A DNA stretch of 64,000 nucleotides from the sequence record NC_028950.1; one strand, written 5' to 3'. Made by a program: the position numbers and the translations under genes. A model generated the notes under the pieces. It worked only from the letters and a program-made list of their open reading frames with translations. It was not told the DNA's origin and did not search any database. Of this stretch, positions 5,773 through 22,890 are shown one piece after another (position 1 is the first letter of the stretch; each line of letters starts with the position of its first letter).

Positions 5773-7050
5773 TTATGCTACCTGGATTTGAATCTCTTCT
5801 TCGATGAGTTTCACGAACATGGCGTCACCCAATGTTCCTGCTTTACCCATCCACATCTGGTTATCCACCGCTACCCGATCATCCGAGCCCACAGTGTTAA
5901 ACAGATAGTTTCGTTTGAAGGTGTCGTGGCAACGCAGCAGCCAACCACCAGCCTCGTATTGCGACCAGTAGACTTCATGCTTGCCTTCACCCGTGACCAG
6001 AGGCCACTTGGGTTCTTCCCACGACATGAAGGTGTGGGGAACGGTTTGCTTCTCCGGATAAGTACGCTCAACAACCAGCGTCGCCGTATCCAGCAACACC
6101 ATGAATGACTGACTCATGGTGAAGTAATTCTGGAGATAAGCTTGTGACTTGAACTGCTGAGCGATCACCCAGTTCGGATTGTCGACCTGATGCTGGATGT
6201 TGAACGCCGAGAAGTCCAGATACGGTTCGCTCTCGAAGTAACGCTCCAGGAACGGGTACTTGAACGTCTTGAATGTCAGTACGTTCGTGTTGGTCAAGAG
6301 CACCTGATCGTTATCCGGCAAGAGCATGTAGCCGCCGAGAATCAGAATCGGAGTCTTCACACACAGATCGCAATCGCTGAACTTGATGTGGACTTTGTCG
6401 ACCAGACCCGTATCCGGATTCAGATCGAACGACAACATATCCGGCGTGATTGCGTGGATGTCGAACGTACCGAAAGTAGCGAACGACAGGAGACCCAGTT
6501 GATTCGCGCCTGACTTCATCCGCGACTTGTTACCGTCGATGATGTAATAGCCTTTCGAATCCGCCGCCGAGTTATGGTAGAAACCATTCACATTGGGCAG
6601 GATCTTCGAGCGCATGGTGATGTAGTCGAAACCCTGTTGATCGCCGAGTTCGTCAGGCTTCACCACGACGTGAGGTTTCTGTTCCTGAGTCAGTTCGACA
6701 CCCGCTCCGACCATATAGTCGATGGAGTCTGCCCAGAAGTCAGCTTCCCACAAATCGCTGAAGATTGCGTTGTTTCGAACGATGACCGGGCTACCTACGA
6801 CAGTAGGTAAAGTTTTATTGCCATTCGCGGTCAGATAGTCTGAAATCGTCCCCACATTGGCTTGGATGCCAGCAGCAACGTTTTCCAGATCCAGCGTCAA
6901 TTCCGTGTCGGTGATTCCGTCCGTCAGGACGACGTAGATCTGGCGGTATTTGGTCAGGAGAGTGCTCGTCTGGATAGCCGAAATGTCGACTTCCGACCAG
7001 CGTTTATTTGTGCCGGGTTCCACGGCGAGAGCACGAACGAAGGTGTACAT
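5773..7050 (-). CDS. phiKZ-like virion structural protein
   Basis: 425-aa ORF with phage codon bias, adjacent to spike and fibre genes; family resemblance from recall. Confidence 0.55.
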   Translation of the reverse strand: MYTFVRALAVEPGTNKRWSEVDISAIQTSTLLTKYRQIYVVLTDGITDTELTLDLENVAAGIQANVGTISDYLTANGNKTLPTVVGSPVIVRNNAIFSDLWEADFWADSIDYMVGAGVELTQEQKPHVVVKPDELGDQQGFDYITMRSKILPNVNGFYHNSAADSKGYYIIDGNKSRMKSGANQLGLLSFATFGTFDIHAITPDMLSFDLNPDTGLVDKVHIKFSDCDLCVKTPILILGGYMLLPDNDQVLLTNTNVLTFKTFKYPFLERYFESEPYLDFSAFNIQHQVDNPNWVIAQQFKSQAYLQNYFTMSQSFMVLLDTATLVVERTYPEKQTVPHTFMSWEEPKWPLVTGEGKHEVYWSQYEAGGWLLRCHDTFKRNYLFNTVGSDDRVAVDNQMWMGKAGTLGDAMFVKLIEEEIQIQVA

Positions 7051-7136: not shown

Positions 7137-9209
7137 ATGTCCGATCCCGTGACCAGCTATCCGTTTGACCCTACGGGGCAAGCGGCTGGCAATCGAATCG
7201 TGGATGAACAGATCGTCGTCCTCCCTCCGGGTGACCGACTGTTCCAGTTCGCCATGCCAGTCTTCGGTCCTTTCTTCGAGGAAGGACACTCGCTGAAGCT
7301 GCGTGATATCAATAACAACGTCACACCATTAGTCTTGGGTGTCGACTATTACCTCAGCCACAAGTTCATGGATGCCTCTCTGGCTACCATGCACCCGATC
7401 TGGGGTTCGTTCAGCTTCCTGAAGCCGATCTCCGGTGTTCTGCTCGCAACGTATCAGACGCTGGGCGGTATCTGGACGATCGATCAAGCGACGATCACTG
7501 AAATCCTGATGAACACGAGTCAGAACCCGCGTATTACTACGTGGGAACAGGTCGTGTCGCGTCCGGTGGATTTCCCGGTGATCGATCACCCGTGGAATCT
7601 GGCCGATATGGTCGGCATGTCGGAAATCTACGGCGTGCTGGAGAACTTCTACACCGCCTATCTCGCGTCTCTGGACCCGAATGGTGGTGGTGGCGGCTCC
7701 TCGATCATCATCGATCACATCAACAACAAGAACAACCCTCACCAGGTGACTGCGGCGCAAACTGGGGCCTATAGCACGCTCCAGATCGACACGATGCTGG
7801 GCGGCTATGTCACGACGACGGGTACTGCTGCGAACTCGACCCTGTTCAATGGGAAGACGTACGCGCAAATGCTGACGGATGTGGTTAACGTGAAGGTGAC
7901 TAGCGCTACCTCTGCAGACAACGCAACGCATGCAACCAACGCCGATACCGCGACAAACGCCAATGCACTTGGTAACAAGAGCCTGGCGCAGTTGATGACC
8001 GACGTGGCAAACACGAAGGTGGCAAATGCCGCTCATGCAGACAACGCTGACCACGCGACCAATGCCGATTTGGCCACCAACTCCAACCAGTTGGGCGGTT
8101 CGACCCTGACTCAGGTATTGTCTGCGGCAGCTGCTCAGACGTCCGCCAATACGACGGAATTCAATGGCAAGACGTATGACCAGGCCAAGGCAGACATTCT
8201 GTCTGGTCAGGCCGCGGACTCCGCCATGCTGGCAGGTCAGACGCTCGCACAGATCATGGCAACGCTCCAGCAGGCAACGGGCGATGCTACGACTCTCGAC
8301 GGCAAGTCGTATACCGACATCATGAACGCTGTGGTGACCACCAAGGTCAACAACGCGACCAATGCGGATACGGCAGCCAACGCAACGGCTCTCGGCGGTC
8401 AGACCCTCTCGCAGATTCTGACATCAGTGGCAGGTGTGGTTCCTGACCTGGCACACAACTCGGAAGCCGTCTACGGCTACACGTTCGATCAGCTGGTGAC
8501 GGCGATCGTTCAAAGTGGTACGTATTCGAACGCACTGGCTTATCTGGCAGTGGATCTGGACATCGCCCATGGCACGGTTCAGCAGCTGAACAACGGTGGT
8601 ACGGTTGATGCCAACTTCAACTACCTGTTCCTGGGTTCGTTCCCGATCCCGACGACTGGTTCGTCCAACCAGTATTACGACCCGACGGTAACTCGCGTCT
8701 CGTCGTCGTTTGATCTGTTCTTCTACTTCCAGGGCTCCACGATTCGTGTGCGTGCGGATGTAGTGATCAACGCCGATCAGACGATGAGCATGTCGCTGTA
8801 CAGCGATGAAGGCGACGTGTCGACGATTCTGTCCATTGGTTACCGTTCTGTCCCGAGCACTCTGCTGTCGAGCGACGGTACGAAGACGGGCATGACCAAC
8901 GAAGTTTACGTCAAGTTCGCGAAGACTTCGAACCTGCGTAAGCTGGGTGTATTCCAGTGGATCAAGAATGACTTCCTGTTGGACGAATCGGAGACTCTCA
9001 GTCTCTACGACAACACGAACGTCAAACTGAACACGGTGAACTGGGGTGGTATGGCGTTCACGGCTTTCGAAGCCAAGCTGAACACCAACCTCTCGAACGA
9101 AACCACCAACCGTACTAACGCCGATACGGCGATCCGTACGGACACTCAGGCAGCACTCGATGCGCTGGCTGATCAGATCAACACTCTCACCAGCACTCCG
9201 GCTGCTTAA
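7137..9209 (+). CDS. Tail fibre protein (phiKZ gp131-like N-terminus)
   Basis: N-terminal YPFDPTG..N.I..E motif of phiKZ-family fibres, HxxNxxNPHxVT motif, internal ADNATHATNAD..LG repeats. Confidence 0.75.
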   Translation: MSDPVTSYPFDPTGQAAGNRIVDEQIVVLPPGDRLFQFAMPVFGPFFEEGHSLKLRDINNNVTPLVLGVDYYLSHKFMDASLATMHPIWGSFSFLKPISGVLLATYQTLGGIWTIDQATITEILMNTSQNPRITTWEQVVSRPVDFPVIDHPWNLADMVGMSEIYGVLENFYTAYLASLDPNGGGGGSSIIIDHINNKNNPHQVTAAQTGAYSTLQIDTMLGGYVTTTGTAANSTLFNGKTYAQMLTDVVNVKVTSATSADNATHATNADTATNANALGNKSLAQLMTDVANTKVANAAHADNADHATNADLATNSNQLGGSTLTQVLSAAAAQTSANTTEFNGKTYDQAKADILSGQAADSAMLAGQTLAQIMATLQQATGDATTLDGKSYTDIMNAVVTTKVNNATNADTAANATALGGQTLSQILTSVAGVVPDLAHNSEAVYGYTFDQLVTAIVQSGTYSNALAYLAVDLDIAHGTVQQLNNGGTVDANFNYLFLGSFPIPTTGSSNQYYDPTVTRVSSSFDLFFYFQGSTIRVRADVVINADQTMSMSLYSDEGDVSTILSIGYRSVPSTLLSSDGTKTGMTNEVYVKFAKTSNLRKLGVFQWIKNDFLLDESETLSLYDNTNVKLNTVNWGGMAFTAFEAKLNTNLSNETTNRTNADTAIRTDTQAALDALADQINTLTSTPAA

Positions 9210-9220
9210 TCTGAGGAATC

Positions 9221-10342
9221 ATGAGCGACGTTACTATCACTCCCGTCTCACATGTTTTCGACGAGACCGGCACCCTTGCCGAGAACTACATCGAAAACGA
9301 ACAACGAGATCTGGCACAGCGCAACGTACGCGCTGCTTGCACGCGATACGGTGCTTTCTACATCGAATCGTTCAAGATCCGGGACGCCAACGGCAATCCG
9401 CTTTTGGCGAACCAATACCAGTTTGGTCTGTTCGCAGAAGAACTGTCCGAAAAGACTGGTAAGGAAATCGCAGGTGCGGTGATCATCACCGACCCGGCGG
9501 TGATTTCGCCTGTCTTCATGGACTACCAGTGTGTCGGTGGTCCGTGGGGCGCAACCAATGAGCAGATCATCGATCTGTTCACGGCGTTGATGACTGACGA
9601 CCGTCCTGTGACGTGGCCGAACATTCTGGGTAAACCGGATGGCTTCAAGCCCGCTCACCACTTCCAGGACATCGGTGACCTCTTCGGTGCCGAGTACTTC
9701 GTCAATGCGCTGGAGCGTCTGACGAACGCGTACCTCATGGGCGACAATGCGTCGCACGACGAGATTCTGCGTAACATCGATCAGCTGCGTCAGGACATGA
9801 ATCAGGGCTTGACTGACCTGAGTAATGCCCTGAAGGCATACGCGGATGCAGGCGATGCCCGTGTTCAGGCAAACCTGGATAACGAAGCTCAGATCCGCGC
9901 TCAGGCTGACACGACGCTCCAAGGCAACATCAACGCAGAAGCGACCACGCGTTCAAACGCTGATACGACGTTGCAGAACAACATCAATGCCGCGATCACG
10001 CATGCGGATAACGGCGATGCGACTCTGCAACAGAACATCAATTCGGAAGCAACTGCTCGTCAGAATGCCGATACTGCATTGAACACCAGCATCACTTCGG
10101 TGAACAATGCACTCGCTGCCCACGTGGCTGCGAAGGGTAACGTGCACAGTCTGACTCCGGCTCAGTTGGGCGTCTACACGACCGCACAGGTCGATGCTCT
10201 GATTGCCCAGATCAACAACCAGCTTACCGGCTATGTCAAGAAGAATGCCGGTGAAGACACTTCGCTTACCGTCAGCGGAGGCGTGTTGTATGGCTGGGTG
10301 GGTGGTGCATGGCGTGCAGTGTGGCCGCCCCAGTGGCAGTGA
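9221..10342 (+). CDS. Tail fibre-like virion protein with coiled-coil repeats
   Basis: phiKZ fibre-type N-terminus (WPNILGKPDGFKPAHHFQDIGDLFG), ~18-aa E..R..AD..LQ..I repeats, GNVHSLTPAQLG, C-terminal GGAWRAVW. Confidence 0.7.
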   Translation: MSDVTITPVSHVFDETGTLAENYIENEQRDLAQRNVRAACTRYGAFYIESFKIRDANGNPLLANQYQFGLFAEELSEKTGKEIAGAVIITDPAVISPVFMDYQCVGGPWGATNEQIIDLFTALMTDDRPVTWPNILGKPDGFKPAHHFQDIGDLFGAEYFVNALERLTNAYLMGDNASHDEILRNIDQLRQDMNQGLTDLSNALKAYADAGDARVQANLDNEAQIRAQADTTLQGNINAEATTRSNADTTLQNNINAAITHADNGDATLQQNINSEATARQNADTALNTSITSVNNALAAHVAAKGNVHSLTPAQLGVYTTAQVDALIAQINNQLTGYVKKNAGEDTSLTVSGGVLYGWVGGAWRAVWPPQWQ

Positions 10343-10408: not shown

Positions 10409-10897
10409 ATGACCATGGTCTTGAAAGACATCACATTGGACGATCTACATCTCGACGAACTGTTGTTTCATCCGTACCCGTATGAACAACAGATGGTGAA
10501 GTACATCACCATGGATGGTCGTCAGATGACTCCCTCCAATGCCGAAGAAGTTCTGAAAGTGAAGATGTTCGGCACGATTAAAATTGAAGGCATGGAAAAG
10601 ATCTCGAAGAAGGTCTTTGATGCCCTGAAACAGTTTTCGCATGATGGTCCCGTGACCTGTCATGTGTTTATCGCTGCTGAGAATGCACCTAGCTTTCCGG
10701 ATCACACAGATCCGGATGGCGTACTGATCTATGTCGTCGATGGCGTGAAAAACATGTTCGTCGATGGTAAGTTCATTACGCTCAATGCCGGGCAGTCTGT
10801 TTTCATTCCGCCTGGTACACCTCACCGTGCCGTCAATTACTCTGCTTCCGTGATGATGAGCGTCGGCTTTGAAAAATTCATTGTGGAGAAGCTTTAA
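10409..10897 (+). CDS. Cupin/JmjC-like oxygenase
   Basis: SFPDHTDPDGVLIYVVDGVK ... LNAGQSVFIPPGTPHRA gives an HxD...H facial triad in a cupin fold. Confidence 0.8.
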   Translation: MTMVLKDITLDDLHLDELLFHPYPYEQQMVKYITMDGRQMTPSNAEEVLKVKMFGTIKIEGMEKISKKVFDALKQFSHDGPVTCHVFIAAENAPSFPDHTDPDGVLIYVVDGVKNMFVDGKFITLNAGQSVFIPPGTPHRAVNYSASVMMSVGFEKFIVEKL

Positions 10898-10898
10898 A

Positions 10899-11963
10899 AT
10901 GCATCGCACGGTATATATCAAAACAACGGAGTCGTGCAACCTGAACTGCAAACACTGCTTTACGGGGGGCAACAAACCGAAGCGTGATTTCCTGGACGTC
11001 GAGCGGACCATCGATTGGGTTCGTCGACTCTTTGAACATCTGAACTTCGAAGACCATACACACTTCGAACTCCACGGTGGTGAACCGTTCCTCCTGCCGG
11101 TTAAGCAGTTGAAGGAACTCACTGCAGGTATCCGTACGTGGGGTCCGGTCAAGCACTCGATTGGTGCGACCACGAATCTGGTTTACAAGTTGACGGATGA
11201 ACTGCTCTGGTTCATGCGCAACGATCTGGAAAGCATCGGTACGTCCTGGGATCCGGATATCCGCTTCGCTAATAGCAAGCAGGAAAATCTCTGGCTCGAC
11301 AACCTGAAAAAGGTCAACGAATTCGCAGACGTCACTCTGAACGTCAGCGTCTCTCGTAAGCTGGTTGAGATGAATCCCCAGCAACTGCTCATGTTCCTGC
11401 GGGATCTCGGCGTCTCCAAGGTGCAATTCGAACGTATCACGCAAAACGGAAATGCGAAGAAGAACCTCGCTCTCTTTCCGTCCAATGCAGAAATCAACGA
11501 CTGGTATCTGCGGCTGCACAACGCGTCCGAGAAGCTGAATGCTCGCGACTGGTTCTACAATGCAGCACTGGAAGACGTGTATGCAAAATTCGAAAATGGC
11601 AATGCTTGCTCTGGCACGTTCTGTCGGAATTGCGAAGAAACCATCTTTACGCTCAACGCGGACGGCAGCATTGGCGGTTGCGCCAATTCGGCGCCGGAAG
11701 AATCCTTTGGACACATCGATCAGGACATCGGAGAACTGTTCGACGCCACTGGACGAATCGATAACATTGTTAAGGAGCGCATGCGCAACGAGCAGTGTTA
11801 CGTTTGCCCTGTGGCCGCTCATTGCGGTGGTGATTGCCACCGACTGGCTTGGGAAGGCGATGTGTGTGCAGCACCCCGGCAGCTGATGAAGAAGCTTGCT
11901 GGCTTGCCGATCGACACTCCCGAAGTCCAACCGAAACGTATCATTCCCATCATGGCGGTTTAA
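10899..11963 (+). CDS. Radical SAM/SPASM protein 1
   Basis: CNLNCKHC, HGGEPF, C-terminal C..CRNC..C..CYVCPVAAHCGGDC; start taken at ATG 10899 rather than the ORF-track start 10869. Confidence 0.9.
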   Translation: MHRTVYIKTTESCNLNCKHCFTGGNKPKRDFLDVERTIDWVRRLFEHLNFEDHTHFELHGGEPFLLPVKQLKELTAGIRTWGPVKHSIGATTNLVYKLTDELLWFMRNDLESIGTSWDPDIRFANSKQENLWLDNLKKVNEFADVTLNVSVSRKLVEMNPQQLLMFLRDLGVSKVQFERITQNGNAKKNLALFPSNAEINDWYLRLHNASEKLNARDWFYNAALEDVYAKFENGNACSGTFCRNCEETIFTLNADGSIGGCANSAPEESFGHIDQDIGELFDATGRIDNIVKERMRNEQCYVCPVAAHCGGDCHRLAWEGDVCAAPRQLMKKLAGLPIDTPEVQPKRIIPIMAV

Positions 11964-11969
11964 GGAAAT

Positions 11970-12530
11970 ATGAGTACATATCGCACAGACGTCGACGCCG
12001 TTGCCCAGGCGTACGTACGTAACCAGGTGAACGGGAGCATCAACCCGTACCGCTCGGACTGGGCCCCGGGCTACACGAACACTGGTCTGCTCGGATGGAT
12101 CTCTCAAGATCCGAACCAGTCGCATCCGTCGTGGAATGGCGAACTCAGTACCGCCGGCAATACGATGGTGACCAACCAGGTTCGCAACGCGATGATCGAC
12201 CTGGGCAACTACTACGGTTGGATCGCCAAGGGCCATTACGGTCTGCAGTCGACCAACCAGAGCGGTGCTTCGTATCTGCAATACGAGGGCTACGGCTACT
12301 TCGTGTTCAACGGTGCAGCACCTGGCGCTCAGGATCATGCGAACCGTGTGGCTGCAGATCTGAACACCGCTGGTACGATGAACGGCACGATCCGTTATCA
12401 GTCGCTCATCGACTTCTACAACTTCGCGTGGAGCATCATCTGGAATCGTAAGGACGACCTGCAAGTCGAACTCACGGTTTGCCATTCGTCGTGCCACACC
12501 TCGTGCCACGGCTCCCGCGGTCGTCGTTAA
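11970..12530 (+). CDS. 186-aa protein with C-terminal (C-H-x-S)3 motif; candidate substrate of the radical SAM cluster
   Basis: Ends VCHSSCHTSCHGSRGRR; these are its only Cys residues; AAGGA RBS upstream; G/N/Y-rich body. Confidence 0.8.
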   Translation: MSTYRTDVDAVAQAYVRNQVNGSINPYRSDWAPGYTNTGLLGWISQDPNQSHPSWNGELSTAGNTMVTNQVRNAMIDLGNYYGWIAKGHYGLQSTNQSGASYLQYEGYGYFVFNGAAPGAQDHANRVAADLNTAGTMNGTIRYQSLIDFYNFAWSIIWNRKDDLQVELTVCHSSCHTSCHGSRGRR

Positions 12531-12539
12531 GGAGATATC

Positions 12540-13607
12540 ATGATCAATCTGTTCGATCGTGTCTATCTGCGACACGACAACGTTCTCGCTCGTGGTGAAG
12601 GTCAGCGTAAACTGATCATCAGCCCGAAGGTCAAAGAGATCGCCTACGTCACCGATAAGCTCCAGCAGCAGCAAGCTGGTATTCTCGGTACGTACGAAAC
12701 GCTCGACGACGCAATCCATTACGCTGGCGACATCAATGCGTTCTGGGGTCAGCTGCTCACCAAGGCGAAGATCATCATCATCGCTGACCGTGTGACGGTC
12801 GCTACGTTACTCGTGCAATACTGGAAGGCGATCTTCAAGGATCCGTCGTTCTCCGCTTTGTACCTGCTGTATGAGGTCACGGTGAACAACGAGAACATGC
12901 ATACGCACCGTCCGACGGAAAAGCGCACGCATCTGTTCTCGCCGAACTCGACCGATGGTGAAATCGAAAAGGTTTCCCAGGAAGAGTTCCAGGAAATCTT
13001 CGACAAGAACGAAGCAGCGATGATCGACTTCTCGTCGGATGCTCAGCTGCCCAGCATTCCGTTCGAATATCTGCTGATGTCGTATATCGCAGATCCGAAG
13101 GACGAGCTCGTCAAACGCGTGCTCTTCCAGAAGCTCGACAAGATCATGCGCAGCAACATCGTCGCCAAGCTGATCGGTGGGCGTGAAGAACTCATGTTCG
13201 AATCGCACAACTACTATCTGCTCAACGGCGATGGTCCTGAAGAACTGATCGTCGATCCGATCGCGTACATGAAGAAGTCCGGCCATCTGGATTGGGTCAT
13301 GGACGAATCGTTCGTCTACGGCAACGAAGACGAGATCCTGAAGAAGTATTCGCTGGATCAGATCAAGTTCTTCTTCGAACAGATCAAGCGCCTGGTTCTG
13401 GAAGACGAATCGATCTTCGTAGCAATCGACTGCGTGAAGAATAAGCAGTTCGCTCGTTTGATCGAATTCGACATCGCCGATCATCAGGGTAACTTCTTCG
13501 GCACGGGTGCATTCGTGAACAAGATCAACGGTCTGTTGGTTTCGTTCGCGTATCAACTCAAACGCATGGGGAACGTCAATCTCCTGAAGCAGTACGAACT
13601 GAAGTAA
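12540..13607 (+). CDS. Hypothetical protein within the radical SAM cluster
   Basis: 355-aa ORF, AAGGAG RBS, strong phage codon bias; no motif recognised. Confidence 0.8.
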   Translation: MINLFDRVYLRHDNVLARGEGQRKLIISPKVKEIAYVTDKLQQQQAGILGTYETLDDAIHYAGDINAFWGQLLTKAKIIIIADRVTVATLLVQYWKAIFKDPSFSALYLLYEVTVNNENMHTHRPTEKRTHLFSPNSTDGEIEKVSQEEFQEIFDKNEAAMIDFSSDAQLPSIPFEYLLMSYIADPKDELVKRVLFQKLDKIMRSNIVAKLIGGREELMFESHNYYLLNGDGPEELIVDPIAYMKKSGHLDWVMDESFVYGNEDEILKKYSLDQIKFFFEQIKRLVLEDESIFVAIDCVKNKQFARLIEFDIADHQGNFFGTGAFVNKINGLLVSFAYQLKRMGNVNLLKQYELK

Positions 13608-13613
13608 TTCGAA

Positions 13614-13654
13614 TGCTGCCTGGCTCCTTCGGGAGCTGGGTAGTATCTTTTTTT
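13614..13654 (+). terminator. Rho-independent terminator with cUUCGg loop
   Basis: CTGCCTGGCTCC-ttcg-GGAGCTGGGTAG followed by a T7 run. Confidence 0.75.
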
Positions 13655-13701: not shown

Positions 13702-14793
13702 ATGAGCGAAGAGAAGAAAGAATCGACGATTTACCTTCCGTCGACCGGAGAACTGGTGAAAGCAGAAGTCAAAGACATCCCGCCCTGGGAAGAAATTCCG
13801 GAAGTCCTCCACTCGGATTCGGCTTCGACGGATAACCTGAAAGTCGTCAACGACGAACTGGTGTGGCCGAAAGCAGTTGAAGGCACGGAAATCAGCGAAG
13901 GCGACAAAGTCGAAATGAAAGTCGAATTCGCCGGCGGCTGGGGTGCAGAACTCCCGCCCGAGCAACAGACCCCGACGGAACAGCCGGGCATTCCGACCGA
14001 CAAGCTGCGCGAAGTCACCGTGCCTTTCGCAGCAGACAAGATCCGCGAGTACTTCCAGGACAAGTCGCTCTTCTTCATCGCGAACTACAGCGAATCGAAG
14101 CTGAAGGGCGGTGCGTTCCTGACGTACCTGTCGAACATCAACATCCCGTCGGATGTGAAGTTCAATACGCCGATCAGCTACGACGAGTACGCCGAGATCA
14201 TGAAGGCGTACATGGAACAGCCGGGCGTGATCAATTGTGCGGGTCTGCATGTCATGGCAGCTGAAATGCTGCTCGTGGCTAAGGGCCTGCCGTACGAGCG
14301 TTCGCCTTACGCTCTGCCGATCTCCGAAGAGATCCTGAAGAAGTTCATCGAAGAACACAAGGATCTGGTCGAGAAGTGGCTGCATTTCATCGACTCGACG
14401 CAAGTGTTCGCTCTGCGTTCGATCAAGGCACTGAACGACTTCTACAATCCGGATACGCGTTTTCCGACTGTGGAAGATCGCAGCTATGTGGGCTGGAACA
14501 TCGCCCAGCTGTTTCGTATTCCGGAATTCATCGCCGTGTACTTCTCGATCCCGAACGTCGAGTACAAGCTGTCGTACTTCAAGGACCAGTACGAAGAGTA
14601 CATGTTCAAGAACGAGACGCTTGCCAAGTACTTCCAGTCGCAGAACAACTTCGCCGCGTTGTACTTCATGCACTACGCGTCGGGTCTCTTCAAGCCGGAA
14701 GACATCAACCACGGTCTGTTCCGTATCGGCGTGTTCGATCCGGAAAGCGAATTCTTCGAGAAGACGCCGTATGACTTCCGCCTTCAAGAGTGA
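13702..14793 (+). CDS. Hypothetical protein within the radical SAM cluster (acidic, Pro-rich N-terminal extension)
   Basis: GAGGA RBS before ATG 13702; ~364 aa with strong codon bias. Confidence 0.8.
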   Translation: MSEEKKESTIYLPSTGELVKAEVKDIPPWEEIPEVLHSDSASTDNLKVVNDELVWPKAVEGTEISEGDKVEMKVEFAGGWGAELPPEQQTPTEQPGIPTDKLREVTVPFAADKIREYFQDKSLFFIANYSESKLKGGAFLTYLSNINIPSDVKFNTPISYDEYAEIMKAYMEQPGVINCAGLHVMAAEMLLVAKGLPYERSPYALPISEEILKKFIEEHKDLVEKWLHFIDSTQVFALRSIKALNDFYNPDTRFPTVEDRSYVGWNIAQLFRIPEFIAVYFSIPNVEYKLSYFKDQYEEYMFKNETLAKYFQSQNNFAALYFMHYASGLFKPEDINHGLFRIGVFDPESEFFEKTPYDFRLQE

Positions 14794-15871
14794 TTCCAAC
14801 TCTTCGATGACGTTGAAGGACGCATCCCAATACCACTTGAGCCTGAGTCTTGAGTGGTTAAAGGGATGCCAGTTCAACTGTAAGGGATGCCACGTCAACA
14901 AAGACAACGGTATGCCTTTCGACGGTCAGCAGTTGGGTCAGTTGCTAAAGTGGATTGAACAGATGCGAGATCGCGGCAATTACTTGCCGACTATCGTGTT
15001 TCTCCAACCCACTGACTTCCTGACAGCCGACAATACCGCCGACATCCTGAAGAGTCCATACGCCTATGAAGTCCTCTCCGGATTCAAACGTCTGTCTTTG
15101 CAGTCGACGTTCTTGAACATGACGCGTGCGAGAGAGCTTGCCTCGATTCTGAAGGCGCGCTACTACCACATGGAGCTTGAGCTCAACTTCATCATTGAGC
15201 CGGAGAAGGTCAACAACGAAAAGTATCTCGAAACGATTCGTGCAAATCGCGATGAGTTCATCGAGTTGCTGGACTGGAAGAAGCATGTAGCGTCCTTCGC
15301 CATCATGAACGTCTATGAATACGATCGGGTGAAGAAGAACGACGTGAAGGCTATCCTGGCTGATTACCAGGCTCTCCACGACAAAGTCAAGGAGAAGTTC
15401 GATTCCACCATTGACTTCAATTTCTCCATGACACGTAACCCGTGGTGGAGTAATGAAGACGTAGCAGATGCTGTACGCAGCGTTAGCCGAATCTTCGACG
15501 GTGGAGTCGATAACGTTTTCAACCAGACCATCCGGTTCTCCTTCGGTAAGCTGGAAGACTCGTCAATCGAAAAGCATTACAACTGGCATCAGGGACATTT
15601 TTACGTGTCGCCGATGATCTATGAACGGATCGCTTCGTTCCATCCGAAGTTAAAGATTCCACACACGCTGTATTCTGTGCTGGAAACCGAAGACTTCGAG
15701 CGCCGGTTGCTGATCGATCAGTATCACAACTCCGAAACCAAGACCGAGTGCAATTCGTGTCGATATCAAGCCTCTTGCATTGAGCGCAATGTCCTGACGT
15801 TTATGGACATGCACGAGATCAAGGACTGCATCATCGCCCGCAAAGCTCTCGATGCCATTAACGTCATCTGA
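14771..15871 (+). CDS. Divergent radical SAM-like protein 2
   Basis: CQFNCKGC and C-terminal CNSCRYQASC; start at ATG 14771 or 14807; the ORF-track extension to 14486 is the shadow of the upstream gene. Confidence 0.75.
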   Translation: MTSAFKSDSNSSMTLKDASQYHLSLSLEWLKGCQFNCKGCHVNKDNGMPFDGQQLGQLLKWIEQMRDRGNYLPTIVFLQPTDFLTADNTADILKSPYAYEVLSGFKRLSLQSTFLNMTRARELASILKARYYHMELELNFIIEPEKVNNEKYLETIRANRDEFIELLDWKKHVASFAIMNVYEYDRVKKNDVKAILADYQALHDKVKEKFDSTIDFNFSMTRNPWWSNEDVADAVRSVSRIFDGGVDNVFNQTIRFSFGKLEDSSIEKHYNWHQGHFYVSPMIYERIASFHPKLKIPHTLYSVLETEDFERRLLIDQYHNSETKTECNSCRYQASCIERNVLTFMDMHEIKDCIIARKALDAINVI

Positions 15872-15920: not shown

Positions 15921-16943
15921 ATGAATAACGAAATCCTGAATGAAATGCTGTCGTCCAAAGTGCAAGACAGCACCGAGATCGAACACCACCTGTTCGAGTA
16001 CTGCAACCTGAACTGCTCGTTCTGTGGTCAAGACCATGACTCGAAGGTCGGTATGGAATCGATCATCGATAAAGCACACAAGACGGTCGACTTCATCTTC
16101 CATTCGAAGAAGAAGAAACACACCATCAACGTGATGGGTGGGGAGATCTTCAATGACAAGATCGAACCACGCGCCTTCTCGGATTATTTCCAGTTCTACG
16201 AAATCATCCGTAAGACGTGTCAGGATCTGGGCGTGGAATTCCAGATCAACTGGGTCACGAACCTGATCTTCACGGAAAACCGTGAGAATGTTCTGTGGCT
16301 CATGAACAAGACCGGCGAGCATTCCAAGATCTCCACGTCGTATGACTTCGCTGGTCGCGGCCTGGACATCAATCGTTCTCTGGTGTTCAAGCACAACCTG
16401 AATCTGTTCAAGAAGGATATCGGCGTTGTTGGTTTCGTTCTCACGAAGCCGGCTATCCGTAAACTGATTAACAGTACGGACATGTTCTTTCAGACTGTCC
16501 TGTATCCGAACTTCCCGTTGTATTTCGATTGGTACGTCCCGGAGAAATCCTCGAACAAGATGATGCCTAGCGAGCAGGAAATGCTCGATGCGCTTCTCTT
16601 TGTCGCCGACAAGTATCCGAACATCGAACCGGTTAAGTCCATGCTGGAGAACGAGCACAACAAGATGACGTGCTTCAGCCTGAACAAGACCACCATCCTG
16701 CCTGACGGTAAGGAAGTCACTTGTCGCTACCTCGAATACGACAAAGAAAAATTTAACAACGTCATTGATTATTCGAGCAATGCCAACATCATCCAGGCTC
16801 ACCTTGATAGAAACGAATGCTATTCGTGTAATTTTTACAACCGCTGTCAGTTTCGGTGTTTCGTTCAAGCAGATTGGACTGAACTCGAACGACTCCCCAG
16901 CTGTTTCATCAAAACCTTTTTCGAGCGAACTGTCGGATCATGA
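15921..16943 (+). CDS. Radical SAM protein 3
   Basis: CNLNCSFC, MGGEIF, C-terminal CYSCNFYNRCQFRC; GAGGA RBS before ATG 15921. Confidence 0.88.
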   Translation: MNNEILNEMLSSKVQDSTEIEHHLFEYCNLNCSFCGQDHDSKVGMESIIDKAHKTVDFIFHSKKKKHTINVMGGEIFNDKIEPRAFSDYFQFYEIIRKTCQDLGVEFQINWVTNLIFTENRENVLWLMNKTGEHSKISTSYDFAGRGLDINRSLVFKHNLNLFKKDIGVVGFVLTKPAIRKLINSTDMFFQTVLYPNFPLYFDWYVPEKSSNKMMPSEQEMLDALLFVADKYPNIEPVKSMLENEHNKMTCFSLNKTTILPDGKEVTCRYLEYDKEKFNNVIDYSSNANIIQAHLDRNECYSCNFYNRCQFRCFVQADWTELERLPSCFIKTFFERTVGS

Positions 16944-17476
16944 AAATCTTTCTCATCGCAGCTGAAGCCGCAAACAAGGTCATCGGTAATAACGGCAAAA
17001 TGCCGTGGCACCTTCCTGAAGATCTTGAACATTTCAAGGACGTGACTGTCGGCTCGGCGGTCATCATGGGTCGCAAGACGTGGGAATCGATCGGCTCACG
17101 ACCGTTGCCTGCGCGTAAGAACATCATTGTCTCCCGGCAGATGGACGCTGGATGGGTTGCTCCGGAAGGCGCATTCCGTGTCCAGAGCCTCAAGTCGGCA
17201 ATCAAGAGCCTGATGGTCGCCGGTTACGAGCATTGCTTCGTGATCGGTGGCGAACAACTGTATCGTGCAGCTATGCCGTGGGCTTCGATGATCATGCTCA
17301 CGAAGCTCTACAAGTCGTACGAAGGCGACGCTCGCTTCCCGGATATCAGCCCATTGGAATGGCGTCTGACCGCTTCGACGCAATACTTCGAAGCATCACA
17401 GCCTTTCTCGGTTCAAACCTACTATCCCATCAACGAGCCTGACGTGGCTAAGTGGGTCGACCTTATCAAGGATTAA
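16940..17476 (+). CDS. folA: Dihydrofolate reductase
   Basis: VIGNNGKMPWHLPEDLEHFK, VIMGRKTWESIG, PLPARKNIIVSR, VIGGEQLY, EGDARFP. Confidence 0.95.
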   Translation: MKIFLIAAEAANKVIGNNGKMPWHLPEDLEHFKDVTVGSAVIMGRKTWESIGSRPLPARKNIIVSRQMDAGWVAPEGAFRVQSLKSAIKSLMVAGYEHCFVIGGEQLYRAAMPWASMIMLTKLYKSYEGDARFPDISPLEWRLTASTQYFEASQPFSVQTYYPINEPDVAKWVDLIKD

Positions 17477-17477
17477 C

Positions 17478-18089
17478 ATGGACATCACGCTGACTGCCCT
17501 GATTTACAACAATCTCGTTATCGGCGGCAAGAACGAACGCCCCGACTTTGTCGGCCAGCACGCCAGTTACATCGGTGATCTTCGTCATCGTGTTGTTGTG
17601 ATCGGCCGTAAGACGTACGAGGCCATGAACGAAGCAAAGCTTGGCAAACGTACGTTGGTCCTCAGTCGTAATCACGAGTATTACTCGGAAGGCGCGACCA
17701 CCGTCCTCGATCCGGCTGCGGCGATCATGATCGCAAGCGACATGGGCGAGAGCGAACTCGTTGTCTTCGGCGGCGCACAGACCTTTCATGCGTACATGCC
17801 GTGGGCATCGAAGATTTGTGTTACGCAGTTCAAGCGTGATCGCGAAGGCGAGATGAAGTTCCCGAAGTTCCCGTGTCATTGGCACGCACCTGTCTGGGAT
17901 TCTCAGACGCTAGATGAAGATGGTGTCGTGCTTCAGTCATTGACGTATCGTCGTTGGCCCGACGGCGTATATCCGGACGAAACTCCGGAGGAGAAGGCGA
18001 TGACGGCTGTCTTGAACGCGTCGCACAGGCGACTCGGCTGGCGTCCGCTTCTCACACAGGAATTGCGAGATCAGCAACGTTCCGAATAG
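17478..18089 (+). CDS. Divergent second DHFR-fold protein
   Basis: Retains VIG, VVVIGRKTYEAM, RTLVLSR, VFGGAQTF and EGEMKFP, but lacks the MPW loop and the conserved folate-binding acidic residue. Confidence 0.75.
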   Translation: MDITLTALIYNNLVIGGKNERPDFVGQHASYIGDLRHRVVVIGRKTYEAMNEAKLGKRTLVLSRNHEYYSEGATTVLDPAAAIMIASDMGESELVVFGGAQTFHAYMPWASKICVTQFKRDREGEMKFPKFPCHWHAPVWDSQTLDEDGVVLQSLTYRRWPDGVYPDETPEEKAMTAVLNASHRRLGWRPLLTQELRDQQRSE

Positions 18090-18103: not shown

Positions 18104-19180
18104 ATGAACCATCCCTCGTTGATCATCAAACCTACGGAAGCGTGTAACTTCAAGTGCACGTTCTGTTCGTCTACCGATATTCAAGGCGATTCTCCTAACC
18201 TGGATATCGAGTATATCAAGCTTTACCTGGAGCGTTTCCCTCAGACTCCAACCATCATCGTGAATGGTGGTGACCCTCTGATGATGAAGCCTGAGTACTA
18301 CTGGGCGATCTTGAAGATCATCGAGGACATGGGTCTGAAAACGACACTCTCGTTTACAAGCAATCTGTGGGCTTTCTACAAGAAGCCTAGCATGTGGGTG
18401 GATCTGTTTCGCCATCCGCTTGTAGGGGTCTCTACGAGCTTCCAATACGGTAATTCACGGCTTAAGGGCGACCTCACTCCGTTTACCGAGGAAGAGTTCT
18501 GGGAAATCTCCGACATGATGCTCGAAATGGTCGGATATCGTCCTTCCTTTATCGCAGTCATCACGAAAGAAAATGAAGATAGCGCGATCAAGACTGTCGA
18601 GCTTGCTAAACAGATGGGTGTTGTCTGCAAGCTTAACTATGCAATGGCGTCGGGACCTAAGACGCAATTCAAAGGCATCACCATCGGTAATGCAGACTCC
18701 ACCTACGTCCTTGCGGATATCTACGAAAAGTATATCGAGATCGCTGAAGCGGGTCTCGCGCCGTGGGAACATAACACGACGGTCATGATTAACAGGCTGA
18801 AGGGCCTGCAGAACCAGATGTGCCCTCAGGCTCGTCAGTGCGATGAAGGTATTCGCGCCTTGCAGCCTGGTGGCAAGTATTACAGCTGTGGTGCGTTCGG
18901 AGACGACGGATTATATCCTATCGACTTCGCCAATGAAATGGCGGGAGGTTTCGAAACACCTCTTCGTTATCAGCCTGAGCTTCAATCGCTCAAGGACAGC
19001 TGCTTCGAGTGCCCGATGTTTGAAATCTGCAACGGGTGTCGTAAGACCACGCACGATCTAAAACGTCTTGACCTAGTGGAAACACACTGCTCCAAGATGA
19101 AGACGCTTGCTCCGAAAATCATTGAACTGAATGGGTTGACTGGAAAGCTTATTCCGACGCCCTATGTCAAGGAGACATGA
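18104..19180 (+). CDS. Radical SAM/SPASM protein 4
   Basis: IIKPTEACNFKCTFC, NGGDPL, C..C..YYSCG..CFECPMFEICNGC..C. Confidence 0.9.
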   Translation: MNHPSLIIKPTEACNFKCTFCSSTDIQGDSPNLDIEYIKLYLERFPQTPTIIVNGGDPLMMKPEYYWAILKIIEDMGLKTTLSFTSNLWAFYKKPSMWVDLFRHPLVGVSTSFQYGNSRLKGDLTPFTEEEFWEISDMMLEMVGYRPSFIAVITKENEDSAIKTVELAKQMGVVCKLNYAMASGPKTQFKGITIGNADSTYVLADIYEKYIEIAEAGLAPWEHNTTVMINRLKGLQNQMCPQARQCDEGIRALQPGGKYYSCGAFGDDGLYPIDFANEMAGGFETPLRYQPELQSLKDSCFECPMFEICNGCRKTTHDLKRLDLVETHCSKMKTLAPKIIELNGLTGKLIPTPYVKET

Positions 19181-19725
19181 TGGAACTGCTTCAGCCTTGG
19201 AAAACCAGCATCGGCAAAATGTCTGTCCTCGATTTCGTGGATATCGATGCGATGCTAAACGAAGTCATGCAACACCCGATGGTGATGGAGAATCCGCGCA
19301 ACGGAGCACTTCGGGTGAAGTATGAAGAGTTTCCGATCTGTTCGGATGTGCTGGAACACAAGCTCAAGCCGGAAGTCGAGAAGTACATCGAAATGTTGGG
19401 TGGTCGTCCGCCCAGAGGTCTCGCATGGAGTAGCTGGTTTCACATCTGCATGCATGGTAACGGATTGATTCCGCACTACCATGACGAGGCACTGAATTCC
19501 GTTCTGTATTTTACAACGTCGAAGGCTAATCTGGTGCTACGCGATCCCCTGTCCTCACAAGCCAGGCAGTGGCCGCAGGACATGCGCAAGAAGATGCACG
19601 CCGACCAACAGTTTCACCCAGTCAAGGGAGACTTCCTGATGTTCCCGGGATACGTCGACCATTATGTCATGGCCGATGAACCGGACTTCCGGATCTCCAT
19701 GGCTACTGACTGGATTTTCAGGTAA
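19177..19725 (+). CDS. 2OG-Fe(II) oxygenase (HxH type)
   Basis: LIPHYH..SVLYF..LRDP..GDFLMFPGYVDHYV..RIS. Confidence 0.8.
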   Translation: MMELLQPWKTSIGKMSVLDFVDIDAMLNEVMQHPMVMENPRNGALRVKYEEFPICSDVLEHKLKPEVEKYIEMLGGRPPRGLAWSSWFHICMHGNGLIPHYHDEALNSVLYFTTSKANLVLRDPLSSQARQWPQDMRKKMHADQQFHPVKGDFLMFPGYVDHYVMADEPDFRISMATDWIFR

Positions 19726-19730
19726 ACAAC

Positions 19731-20672
19731 ATGCTAGCTAACGAATCCGGGATCCTTAACGTCTCGTTGAATCCCACGTACTACTGCAACTTCCGTTGCG
19801 ACTTCTGCTACCTCACGAAGAAGCAGTTGAATACGCAGAACTACCTGCCGATCGACGGGATCCGTAAGCGTTTCCTGGATATCGTTAACTCCGGCCATGA
19901 AATCGGTCACGTGGATCTGTACGGTGGGGAAGTGCTGCTTCTCCCCAACGAGTATTTGCTCCAGATCGCTGACCTGATGCAGGAATTCGCAGTCGAGGAT
20001 TGCGAGATCATCACCAACCTGTCTGCCTACAAGAAGCAGGTAGTCGAAGATCTGCGTTTCGGTATTTCCGTGAGCTACGATTTTGAACATCGTGCTCAGC
20101 ACGAGCATGTCTGGCAGAACATGCTCAAGATCCCCCGTGAGTTCACGATCCTCACGCTTGGCATTCCTGAAATCGTCAAGCGAGATCCGGCTGAACTCAT
20201 CGAACAGATCAACCTGCTGGAGAATTGCAAAGCCTGGGAGATCAAGCCTTACAGCAAGAACCAGGCTAACCAGCTTGATGTGACCGATGCTGAGTTCGAA
20301 GAATTCGTCAAGAAGATCATCGAGTACCCGAACAAGAAGTTCGAGTTCCTCAATGAGACGAAGCTTCGGACCATCAAGTTCCGTGACTACAACGCGTTCT
20401 CCGACAACCACGTCTACATCACGCCTAAGGGTAACTTCGGTGTGCTGGAGTTTGACGAGAACGATCGTGAGTTCTTCCTTGAACTGAAGACCATGGACCA
20501 ATATGTCATGTGGACTCAGGGTGAGAAGGCTCGGGTCATGAGTAACGAAACCTGTGGTAGCTGCCAGTACATGGGCAAGTGCGCTTCCGAGCATCTGCGG
20601 GAAGTCAAGTCCATGCAAGACGGCTGCAACGGCTTTTACAATTTGATTTCTTGGTTCGAGGCCCGGTCATGA
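19731..20672 (+). CDS. Radical SAM protein 5
   Basis: NPTYYCNFRCDFCYL, LYGGEV, C-terminal CGSCQYMGKC..C. Confidence 0.88.
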   Translation: MLANESGILNVSLNPTYYCNFRCDFCYLTKKQLNTQNYLPIDGIRKRFLDIVNSGHEIGHVDLYGGEVLLLPNEYLLQIADLMQEFAVEDCEIITNLSAYKKQVVEDLRFGISVSYDFEHRAQHEHVWQNMLKIPREFTILTLGIPEIVKRDPAELIEQINLLENCKAWEIKPYSKNQANQLDVTDAEFEEFVKKIIEYPNKKFEFLNETKLRTIKFRDYNAFSDNHVYITPKGNFGVLEFDENDREFFLELKTMDQYVMWTQGEKARVMSNETCGSCQYMGKCASEHLREVKSMQDGCNGFYNLISWFEARS

Positions 20673-21229
20673 GCGTGAGTAACCTTTGGAGTACCCCCAT
20701 CGGCGAACGTAATCTGGAACCAAAGGTTACGTTCTACAAATTGCTGGATGAAGTAATGAGTCACCCGGCAATCATGCGTGACGTGAAAGTCGGTTCGCTT
20801 CGTATTTCGGACCGCAAGGACGAATTCCCTCAATGCACTCAGTTCATCGAGAATCATCTTCAGGATGAACTGAAAGGCTACGTGTACCAGGAGTTCGGTC
20901 ACCGCGTTAAGGGTGTGAGGTGGTCGGCCTGGATTCATACATGCTTTCGTGGTACGGGTTTGGTTCCGCATTACCACATGGGCGATGAGCACTTCGCTAG
21001 TGTTCTGTATCTGTCGGAGTCGAAGGCATCTCTGATTATCCGGGATCCTCGGGCCAACATGGTTCGCAACTTTCCTCAGGAAATCCTGAAGACGAATTTT
21101 GCGGATTACAAGCTCGATCCTCGCCCTGGCGATTTCGTGATGTTCCCCACTTACCTCGATCATTACGTGATGTCGGATGAACCTGACTTCCGCGTTTCGA
21201 TCGCTATCGATTGGTGTCTCGATGATTAA
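20669..21229 (+). CDS. 2OG-Fe(II) oxygenase (HxH type), paralogue of 19177-19725
   Basis: LVPHYH..SVLYL..IRDP..GDFVMFPTYLDHYV..RVS; start ATG 20669 overlaps the previous stop. Confidence 0.8.
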   Translation: MSVSNLWSTPIGERNLEPKVTFYKLLDEVMSHPAIMRDVKVGSLRISDRKDEFPQCTQFIENHLQDELKGYVYQEFGHRVKGVRWSAWIHTCFRGTGLVPHYHMGDEHFASVLYLSESKASLIIRDPRANMVRNFPQEILKTNFADYKLDPRPGDFVMFPTYLDHYVMSDEPDFRVSIAIDWCLDD

Positions 21230-21890
21230 CCCTCTGAAGCAAGAAGACGTCGACCGTCTGAAAGAAACGACGAAAGTCGCCCCCATCACACTCGAACGCA
21301 AGCCGTTCAATTCGACCGACTTCCTCGGCGACTACCTGACGAAGGGGTTCTACTCCTTCTCAGCCAAGCATCTCATGGCGCCCATCGAAATCCAGCGTTT
21401 CGAAGTCGTCACGGTGAAACACGAAGACAACTGCTTCCATGCAGAAGGTCATGAGTTCCACAACGACTACATGCGTCTGTCGATCGAACAACTCGGTCGC
21501 GATCTGCGTCGCTGGCTCCATGAAGTGCCGGTCGAACTCACATTCGACTTCTTCGCGGAATCGGTCAACGATCACGTGCAGCACTGGCATAGCGATGCGC
21601 AATACGCGATGCCGGAACAGAACGCAACCATCAACTGCTTTTTCGACAATACGTCGGAAACGCTCGGTGGTCGTTTCGACATGGCTCCGTACAGCGCGGA
21701 CATCATCGGCACGAAGAAGCTCCCGGGCTACTTCACGTCGATCTATCCGCAAGCTTACGACGTGATCATCTTCAACCAGAACCGGAACTTCCTGCATAAG
21801 GCGGTGCCGTCGGTTGCTAAGCGTCGTATGGTTTCGTTCGCGGCAACGTTTGCCGACATCAACCCTCTTCTCCCGAATTGGCAGCCATGA
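21222..21890 (+). CDS. 2OG-Fe(II) oxygenase (HxD type, prolyl-hydroxylase-like)
   Basis: WHSD..INCFFD..LGG..IIFNQNRNFLHKA..RR. Confidence 0.7.
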   Translation: MINPLKQEDVDRLKETTKVAPITLERKPFNSTDFLGDYLTKGFYSFSAKHLMAPIEIQRFEVVTVKHEDNCFHAEGHEFHNDYMRLSIEQLGRDLRRWLHEVPVELTFDFFAESVNDHVQHWHSDAQYAMPEQNATINCFFDNTSETLGGRFDMAPYSADIIGTKKLPGYFTSIYPQAYDVIIFNQNRNFLHKAVPSVAKRRMVSFAATFADINPLLPNWQP

Positions 21891-22468
21891 TCGACACAGG
21901 CGAATTCATCAGCGAGTATTTGACCAAAGGCTTCTATCGTTTCGATGCTTCGGAGGTTCTCTCCAGATTCGATATCAAGGCTTTTGGGACGATCAAGAAA
22001 ACGGACGCAACGTTCGACACGGAAGATCCGAAAGAGCGCTACAAGGCTTATACGCCAGCGCAAACGGTACTCCTGCGTCAATTGTTGAAGGATATCTCTG
22101 AAGTCTACTTCAGCGACCTCAACCACGAGCTCCGTTTCAACGATATGTGGGCGTCGGCGAACCCGTACACCTACTCCTGGCACAACGACACGCTGCGTTG
22201 CTGGCCTGGCTTCAACAGCAATGTGAACTGCTATTTCGATAGCATGGATGAATCGATCGGCGGTGCGTTGCAGATGCACCCGATGGTGGAAGATTACGAT
22301 TCGATCGCCGACGACAGTCCGTTGATTGCGGAAGTCTTCCCCCAGAAGTTCGACATCATCGTCATCAATCAGAACAGCACGTTCCTGCACCGTGTCCGTC
22401 ATACGGAAGAGAAGCGCACGATGCTCTCGTTCGCAGCAGGCTTCTTCGACTTCAACCCGGTCTTCTAA
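21878..22468 (+). CDS. 2OG-Fe(II) oxygenase (HxD type), paralogue of 21222-21890
   Basis: WHND..VNCYFD..IGG..IVINQNSTFLHRV..KR. Confidence 0.7.
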   Translation: MAAMIDTGEFISEYLTKGFYRFDASEVLSRFDIKAFGTIKKTDATFDTEDPKERYKAYTPAQTVLLRQLLKDISEVYFSDLNHELRFNDMWASANPYTYSWHNDTLRCWPGFNSNVNCYFDSMDESIGGALQMHPMVEDYDSIADDSPLIAEVFPQKFDIIVINQNSTFLHRVRHTEEKRTMLSFAAGFFDFNPVF

Positions 22469-22470: not shown

Positions 22471-22890
22471 ATGCAAGAATGGAAGATGTGGCAGGAGATG
22501 TACAACAACCTGGTAACCGATCACTCGGATGCCGGACATAAACACCTGCGAGAGATCCGTGATCTGACTGTCGAGAATGCGCTCTTCTACATTCTTGAAC
22601 AGGCGGGTTATGGAATCTATCCTGCCAAGTCCTACATGGTGGCGATCATCTATGCCACCAAACTTCAGGAAGTTTATGGAGAGGATTTCTACGAGGTTCT
22701 GGATGATCCGGAGCTTCTGTACGGGCAGGATGATTTCTTTGTTCCGTACTCGCAAAACAAGGCGTTCTACGATGAACTCATCGAAGCTCTGAAAACGATT
22801 CCGAACTGGATCGAGAAAGGATGGGCTCCGAAGACAGTCGAGTACTTCCACTTGGAGTGTACTGAAGCGGGCGTAGCATCGATCAGCTGA
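22471..22890 (+). CDS. Hypothetical protein closing the radical SAM cluster
   Basis: 139-aa ORF in the same operon; YPAKSYMVAIIYA motif of unknown function. Confidence 0.7.
   Translation: MQEWKMWQEMYNNLVTDHSDAGHKHLREIRDLTVENALFYILEQAGYGIYPAKSYMVAIIYATKLQEVYGEDFYEVLDDPELLYGQDDFFVPYSQNKAFYDELIEALKTIPNWIEKGWAPKTVEYFHLECTEAGVASIS

Follow-up and report, generated by a model that had tools for sequence, protein, structure and literature searches.

A phage protein family with a conserved C-terminal Cys-His tail is a candidate substrate of a multi-radical-SAM maturation cassette

The window analysed here is a 64-kb stretch of DNA (NC_028950.1, positions 62001-126000) from the Ralstonia phage RSL2, a jumbo myovirus that is related to phiKZ and belongs to the genus Chiangmaivirus, and coordinates given below refer to this window unless they are assigned to another locus. 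Our subject is open reading frame (ORF) 068 (YP_009212917.1), annotated as 'hypothetical protein', and the gene cassette in which it lies. The gene starts with an ATG, just 5' of which is AAGGAAAT, ends with a TAA and begins 6 nt after the stop codon of ORF067, which encodes a radical S-adenosylmethionine (rSAM) enzyme. The only cysteines of the protein are residues 171, 175 and 179 (bases 12480-12506), and all of them fall within a 16-residue C-terminal tail that ends in RGRR. A first-pass annotation, made from the DNA letters alone, had pointed out this arrangement of the cysteines, the position directly behind an rSAM gene and a body rich in Gly, Asn, Tyr and Trp, and the ORF translations bear out these observations: the first 170 amino acids (aa) contain 10% Asn, 10% Gly, 7.6% Tyr and 3.5% Trp. 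ORF068 had zero matches in Pfam, NCBIfam (E ≤ 0.01), PADLOC and a PDB sequence search, and its sole PHROG assignment is to the unnamed family PHROG 35144. An antisense ORF of 613 aa (10878-12719, minus strand) overlaps ORF067 to ORF069; we found no family evidence for it, and it is probably a by-product of the codon bias of the coding strand.

A word-indexed search returned 12 full-length relatives of ORF068 with 35-87% identity and several further proteins that share the tail alone. When a profile was searched against 1.84 billion representatives, 746 clusters (at the 50% identity level) were recovered at E ≤ 1e-3 and 397 at the stricter limit of E ≤ 1e-10, most of the matches being full-length proteins of 170-220 aa. 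DNA patterns back-translated from the strict tail identified 30 IMG/VR contigs and six contigs filed under metagenome-assembled genomes, several of them 220-380 kb in length, and with a more general tail pattern we found proteins that end with the tail in at least 120 IMG/VR contigs. Searches of the phage collection by tblastn with the distant members P0019 and P0020 returned nothing, RSL2 included, probably because the low-complexity filter masked the tail. A literature search, which included phage rSAM-dependent RiPPs (ribosomally synthesised peptides with post-translational modifications), rSAM-modified virion proteins and CXXX-repeat systems, found no published description of the tail family or its cassette, and papers on jumbo phages name the genes merely 'radical SAM', 'cupin' or '2OG oxygenase' (2OG, 2-oxoglutarate). 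As far as these searches reach, the ORF068 family is large, undescribed and phage-restricted.

The element that unites the family is the tail. The pattern C-H-x-x-C-H-x-x-C-H-x-x-R-x-R-R forms the C-terminus of 151 of the 170 family proteins retrieved, and its Cys, His and Arg positions are invariant in our alignments A1 and A2, in which the bodies have diverged to 19-35% identity. The fourth position of the unit is Ser in 75-94% of the sequences and otherwise Asn, Ala or Asp; the strict CHxS unit that had been noted first is correct for the RSL2 sequence, and the unit fixed across the family is C-H-x-x. At the DNA level, 33 different versions were present among 43 tails, with synonymous positions varying freely, and we therefore conclude that selection acts on the peptide. 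Judged by its invariance despite body divergence, its varied codons and the number of contigs that carry it, the motif lies far beyond what chance could produce. Pairs among 84 mid-size members shared on average 28% identity in the body and 82% in the tail, where it has to be considered that these loci were chosen by the tail pattern and that the fixed tail positions are identical by construction. Among isolates of the RSL2 group, ORF068 is 83-97% identical. The body is thus well preserved among close relatives and diverges over longer distances: an invariant tail on a variable body describes the family as a whole, and the idea of a hypervariable body fails within the RSL2 group.

Rare variants retain just the first Cys-His and the final H-S-S-R-G-R-R. 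One-Cys tails of the form CH[NS]S-YVAPP-HS[SA]RGRR were found at locus L154 (8030-8896) and in the proteins P0030, P0031, P0037, P0045, P0046 and P0116; DNA patterns for this variant had no matches in IMG/VR or the JGI metagenomes, and three other contigs that carry it are too short to show gene context. The tail also occurs on bodies of a second kind. Among 150 distinct tail-bearing ORFs, 45 are small (61-145 aa), most of them tandem A/B paralogue pairs of about 127 aa (at L047, L071, L077, L095, L107, L116 and other loci), and their bodies were not matched by the ORF068 body profile, save for six shorter or truncated members. Some genomes carry up to three tail-protein copies with different bodies, and a 151-kb contig (IMGVR_UViG_3300025138_000014) combines one mid-size copy (L019) with one small pair (L116). 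Since the same tail is attached to two unrelated body families, one in proteins of 170-320 aa and the other in the tandem proteins of about 127 aa, we regard it as a portable module.

Comparison of the cassette proteins with all ORFs of 147 loci revealed a recurring gene order: a cupin (ORF066 in RSL2), an ORF067-type rSAM, the tail protein, a member of the ORF070 family, the ORF072-, ORF075- and ORF077-type rSAMs and a member of the ORF081 family. More than 100 viral contigs that are unrelated to one another, and four lineages of isolates, show this order. An ORF067 homologue lies directly upstream of 74 of the 86 testable mid-size or large (M/L-class) tail genes, and an ORF070 homologue lies directly downstream of such copies in 73 of 87 testable cases. 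When tail loci were scored for adjacent rSAM genes, a check proposed along with the first-pass annotation, a member of the rSAM families was present in 131 of 142, and most of the remaining loci are cut short; at three rSAM-negative loci an ORF with an N-terminal CxxxCxxC adjoins the tail genes. Behind the small tandem pairs come two to five ORF071-type rSAMs, and longer loci of this kind add the core 067, 072, 075, 077 and 081 families. Among 50,697 deposited phage genomes, in which isolate phages were located via rSAM queries, the cassette was found only in the RSL2 group, Atu_ph07, Phosso and pPa_SNUABM_DT01 (DT01), and in all four lineages the tail protein occupies the same cassette position. 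Large fibre-like or structural genes lie immediately ahead of the cassette in several independent lineages. The surroundings of the cassette vary in other respects: in marine T4-like contigs (L005, L006) thyX lies directly upstream, and a tandem pair of dihydrofolate-reductase genes (16940-18089), ORF073 and ORF074, the latter diverged, is found inside the cassette in the RSL2 lineage only.

An N-terminal CxxxCxxC is present in the products of ORF067, ORF072, ORF075 and ORF077 (Table 1). Since translation from an ATG at 14807 restores this motif to ORF071, we conclude that ORF071 encodes a fifth rSAM enzyme; its homologue at L007 (13575-14672, E 1.4e-69) has CxxxCxxC at residue 28. ORF075 shares 55-57% identity with its counterparts in Atu_ph07, Phosso and DT01, and gave phmmer E-values of 1e-113 to 1e-149 in metagenomic loci. 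With the SPASM model TIGR04085 (cut-off 27 bits), ORF067 passes at 30.1 bits and ORF075 stays below at 20.3 bits, and ORF072 weakly matches the SPASM part of TIGR04084. The best named matches of ORF067 are maturases of peptides or proteins (PapB, DynA, YhhB, anSME and DarE) and all score far below their cut-offs, and ORF067 reaches 28.1 bits against the CXXX-repeat target maturase TIGR04115 (cut-off 350) over residues 13-75 only. An assignment of one rSAM to each repeat of the tail was ruled out by L154, where a single Cys stands beside five rSAMs. At L004, an ORF077-type rSAM and an ORF081-type domain are joined in one gene of 442 aa (14089-15417), a fusion that suggests joint action of the two proteins.

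A Cys-rich tail encoded beside many Fe-S enzymes might also belong to an enzyme helper, that is, a sacrificial sulfur donor or an Fe-S or electron carrier for the rSAM cluster. We consider this very improbable, since the tail offers no more than three Cys, or a single one in some variants, the copies in a genome can number up to three with different bodies, and the protein is found in virions without the enzymes, as described below.

The AlphaFold2 model of ORF068, built on a 24-sequence alignment, predicts an alpha/beta protein (predicted local distance difference test (pLDDT) 89.4, predicted template modelling score (pTM) 0.83) with four long helices at residues 5-24, 68-82, 120-131 and 143-160, of which the N-terminal one is amphipathic; a long beta-hairpin spans 85-113, and the last strand is short. 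In the model, no structure is seen for residues 171-186 (pLDDT 46-57). Exposed and disordered on a confidently folded body, the tail would therefore be accessible to enzymes. Using Foldseek, no relative of the model was found in the PDB (best E 0.5), and fold matches in BFVD at E ≤ 0.001 were exclusively uncharacterised phage proteins, with gp170 of Atu_ph07 just above this threshold (E 1.3e-3, probability 0.99). The body had initially been likened to beta-rich fibre tips; with four helices in an alpha/beta fold and no fold relative among fibre proteins, the model and the Foldseek search rule out a fibre-tip or receptor-binding fold.

The tail-bearing ORF of Atu_ph07 shows the same synteny as that of RSL2 and has a computed mass of exactly 31.89 kDa. 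Purified particles of this phage were analysed by electrospray ionisation tandem mass spectrometry of gel slices, and the 31.89-kDa protein gp170 is listed in Table S5 of that study with eight unique peptides and 35% coverage (PMC6102473). It was found in fragments 1-9 and was most abundant in fragment 1, whereas on the same gel the peak of the 117-kDa sheath protein was in fragment 2 and that of the 43-kDa capsid protein was in fragment 6 (PMC6102473). A peak of a 32-kDa protein in the top slice is an anomalous gel position. The rSAMs gp171, gp168 and gp165 and the protein gp169 are not in the list, and the upstream gp176 and gp177 are (PMC6102473). ORF068 itself would accordingly be predicted to reside in the RSL2 virion. 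The earlier proposal of a modified or cross-linked clamp on a virion protein fits with gp170 being in particles at an unexpected gel height; its fibre-tip component has to be abandoned.

These data also bear on whether ORF068 is a classical RiPP precursor, in which the body of about 170 aa would be an oversized leader and the modified 16-residue core would be released as a bioactive peptide or cofactor. Its gene context has the features by which RiPP loci are recognised, namely a putative encoded substrate with a conserved core beside candidate modifying enzymes, here rSAM/SPASM maturases. Moreover, the C-terminal core is invariant and the N-terminal part variable, and small precursors exist as tandem multi-copies. 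However, the body is predicted with confidence to be a folded domain and is conserved over its full length, no protease or exporter gene was recognisable in the cassette in Pfam and NCBIfam scans, and the gp170 peptides were recovered from virions at or above the size of the full protein and not from a leader remnant. Release of a small product is therefore improbable in our view.

We instead favour, with confidence a little better than even, the reading that the ORF068 family comprises virion-associated proteins with a tail that serves a multi-rSAM maturation cassette as its substrate. The tail is the sole thing common to two body classes that share the same rSAM core and is therefore the common element for the enzymes; a protein as the end-product fits because a protease or exporter is not recognisable among the cassette genes. 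In the mechanism that we propose, the tail would be the dedicated protein substrate of a co-inherited machine consisting of the core rSAMs ORF067, ORF072, ORF075 and ORF077, plus ORF071 in some lineages, together with the JmjC-like cupin, the 2OG oxygenases and the accessory ORF070 and ORF081 families. These enzymes would act inside the infected cell, and the matured protein would then enter the virion, probably at a place near the products of the flanking fibre or baseplate genes. As to chemistry, the rSAMs would most likely form covalent bonds at the invariant Cys and His, which are natural targets for such enzymes; these could be thioether or carbon-carbon or carbon-nitrogen cross-links like those of ranthipeptides, dynobactin and cyclophane-forming systems, and the oxygenases may hydroxylate His or Arg. 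As the outcome, a floppy tail would become a rigid clamp that is possibly cross-linked between chains or holds a metal. A more far-reaching version, to which we give somewhat less than even credence, is that the portable Cys-His tail serves as a tag on which a machine of four to five enzymes builds a cross-link within or between chains, or a metal-holding, cofactor-like knot, on virion components.

Several observations weigh against a modified tail. Modification has been observed on no family member. The tail at L154 (CHNS-YVAPP-HSSRGRR) has one Cys and the locus keeps all five rSAMs; the enzymes may have other targets. No cassette rSAM reaches the cut-off of any characterised family, so that the chemistry cannot be read from homology. 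The RefSeq virion tag is on ORF057 and ORF065 and not on ORF068. Finally, the gel loading buffer used for Atu_ph07, as described, contained no reductant (PMC6102473), so that the shift of gp170 could be due to ordinary disulfides formed by the three Cys of the tail.

Some of these points are also what would be expected if the tail were an unmodified metal site (Zn, Fe, Cu or Fe-S) by which a virion protein is clamped into an oligomer, with the rSAMs acting on something else such as the fibres or a small molecule. Invariant Cys and His are classic metal ligands, and a period of four would align them on one helix face; the homologue gp170 is in virions, where disulfide or metal bridging could account for its high position in a gel with no listed reductant, and the one-Cys variant keeps every enzyme. 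Against this explanation, the tail protein is the only element common to both body classes that travels with the rSAM core, and the cassette has no other conserved candidate substrate. SPASM-type rSAMs typically act on peptides or proteins, and the R-x-R-R and small residues are as invariant as the ligands, which is a better fit to recognition by an enzyme. We therefore judge an unmodified metal site to be unlikely, if still worth serious attention. The long and short tail fibres of T4 carry metal-binding His motifs on the trimer axis, inside beta-structured shafts, and need no enzymes for this. The ORF068 family resembles them in its periodic metal-ligand residues and in being encoded beside fibre genes, but differs from them in its alpha/beta body, in a motif that forms a free C-terminal tail and in the rSAM genes that accompany it.

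Maturation of whole proteins by rSAM enzymes at short motifs is already known for HxsA (PMC13128918) and CrpA (PMC13692751). HxsA, a periplasmic defence effector of Proteobacteria, belongs to a bacterial antiphage system in which it is matured by the rSAMs HxsB and HxsC with HxsD (PMC13128918). The HxS repeats in the RSL2 tail had been taken as a link to this His-Xaa-Ser system, and one could imagine that ORF068 is a phage-borne HxsA-like effector whose matured basic His-x-Ser repeats bind incoming DNA and exclude competing phages. Indeed, HxsA is modified as a whole protein by two rSAMs at S-H-x-S-S (PMC13128918), and both are full-size proteins with short His repeats and more than one adjacent rSAM gene; the RSL2 tail consists of three H-x-S units followed by a basic end, and the cassette rSAMs have weak matches to the HxsC, HxsB and HxsC4 models. 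These matches are of 20-32 bits against cut-offs of 268-500, however: ORF075 scores 31.5 bits with HxsC (TIGR03977, cut-off 267.9), ORF072 19.7 bits with HxsB (TIGR03978, cut-off 370) and ORF067 23 bits with HxsC4 (cut-off 500). An NCBIfam scan found no match to the HxsD model among 18 neighbouring proteins and none to HxsA for ORF068, on which no Pfam domain, peptidoglycan-binding domains included, was found. In the phage tails Cys is invariant and Ser is not, and the HxS repeat by which HxsA is defined does not involve Cys. The tail of the ORF068 family is also strictly C-terminal with an R-x-R-R end, the phage cassette contains four to five rSAMs plus oxygenases, a homologue has been found in a virion, and the family is confined to phage contigs. 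We thus retain the His-Xaa-Ser system as an analogy; membership in it is ruled out by the sub-cut-off scores, the missing HxsD match and the non-invariant Ser, and an HxsA-like defence function seems far-fetched.

CrpA of Methanococcus voltae is a Cys-rich protein on which the rSAM/SPASM enzyme CrpC installs ranthionine cross-links (PMC13692751). As proposed for the tail, an rSAM/SPASM enzyme here modifies Cys of a sizeable protein encoded beside it, and the best named match of ORF067 is the ranthipeptide maturase PapB. The archaeal system differs in using one enzyme and another substrate architecture, and no relationship to it was found above family cut-offs. The RiPP maturases DynA and DarE and the cyclophane formers YhhB/GrrM/XyeB, which cross-link aromatic or His side chains, and the CXXX-repeat target maturase TIGR04115 share with the phage enzymes their architecture and a target with a short periodic repeat, here C-x-x-x three times. 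The phage enzymes score 16-49 bits with these models against cut-offs of 300-650, and the substrates of the named enzymes are short leader-core peptides, unlike the phage cassette with its lack of a recognisable leader protease.

The capsid of phage HK97 is cross-linked autocatalytically. If the more far-reaching version, with the tail as a tag, is true, it would describe a mode of virion maturation that is distinct from both proteolysis and such autocatalytic cross-linking and that is widespread in jumbo and marine T4-like phages. Should the tail be modified, no rSAM maturation system would have been found before this one for a protein of phage particles, and new chemistry would be added to virion assembly; its reach would be hundreds of protein clusters in phages of soil, plant-pathogen and marine hosts. 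It would also explain why many large phages have rSAM, cupin and 2OG-oxygenase genes in otherwise puzzling clusters next to their fibre genes, and enzymology would gain four to five uncharacterised rSAM/SPASM enzymes that co-operate on one tiny, invariant and trackable substrate. Trypsin should release the target peptide as one predictable fragment, so that descriptive data would suffice as a test.

The remaining genes of the region (Table 1) include candidate partners of the tail protein. Homologues of the fibre-like ORF064 and ORF065 precede the cassette in DT01, L048, L050, L121, L148 and L154, and homologues of ORF066 are the first cassette gene, upstream of the ORF067-type rSAM, in most loci. 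ORF069 matched nothing in Pfam or NCBIfam. The terminator-like hairpin behind it suggests that the fibre genes, the cupin, ORF067, ORF068 and ORF069 may form one transcription unit apart from ORF070 onward. The conserved domain of the ORF070 family was modelled by AlphaFold2 with a pLDDT of 87.5 and had no PDB relative by sequence or by fold (best fold E 0.13). Homologues of ORF079 and ORF080 were found in several loci.

Table 1. Genes and elements in and around the cassette (positions in the 64-kb window of RSL2)
Feature	Position	Strand	Evidence or remarks
ORF068, tail-bearing protein	11970..12530	+	186 aa; alpha/beta body (predicted) plus C-terminal (C-H-x-x)3-R-x-R-R tail
16-codon tail CHSS-CHTS-CHGS-RGRR, proposed modification site	12480..12527	+	Invariance, varied synonymous codons, low pLDDT
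ORF067, radical-SAM/SPASM	10899..11963	+	CNLNCKHC at residue 13; directly upstream of tail gene
ORF071, fifth radical-SAM enzyme	14807..15871	+	CQFNCKGC upstream of RefSeq start 14912; weak Pfam Radical_SAM
ORF072, core radical-SAM enzyme	15921..16943	+	CNLNCSFC at residue 28; homologues in all well-covered loci
ORF075, radical-SAM/SPASM	18104..19180	+	Most conserved gene of the cassette; Pfam Radical_SAM 47.5 bits
ORF077, core radical-SAM enzyme	19731..20672	+	CNFRCDFC at residue 19; Pfam Radical_SAM 34.9 bits
ORF064 and ORF065, fibre-like virion proteins, possible partners	7137..10342	+	ORF065 annotated virion structural protein
ORF066, cupin/JmjC-like oxygenase	10409..10897	+	Pfam Cupin_2 E 4.8e-12, JmjC_2 E 1.6e-5
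ORF069, lineage-restricted accessory protein	12540..13607	+	Homologues only in L007, L009, L020, L154
Terminator-like hairpin	13613..13646	+	15-bp stem plus T run; consensus scan only; directly after ORF069
ORF070 family, conserved partner	13702..14793	+	Downstream of M/L-class tail genes; alignments A3, A4
ORF076, 2OG-Fe(II) oxygenase	19177..19725	+	Pfam 2OG-FeII_Oxy_5 34.2 bits; paralogue of ORF078, E 8e-54
ORF078, 2OG-Fe(II) oxygenase	20669..21229	+	Pfam 2OG-FeII_Oxy_5 37 bits
ORF079 and ORF080, paralogues	21222..22468	+	E 3e-33; ORF080 weak 2OG-FeII_Oxy_3 match
ORF081 family, small conserved last cassette gene	22471..22890	+	Closes cassette in many loci; PHROG 20737

Paralogues recur in this region. 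The tandem pairs ORF076/ORF078 and ORF079/ORF080 (19177-22468) close to the end of the cassette vary in number between lineages. ORF064 and ORF065 are likewise paralogues, with Ala/Asn/Thr-rich repeats, and in distant phages, too, their homologues lie upstream of the cassette, in L154 within 2031-6271; ORF065 and its L154 homologue have the C-terminal end ...WPPQWQ in common.

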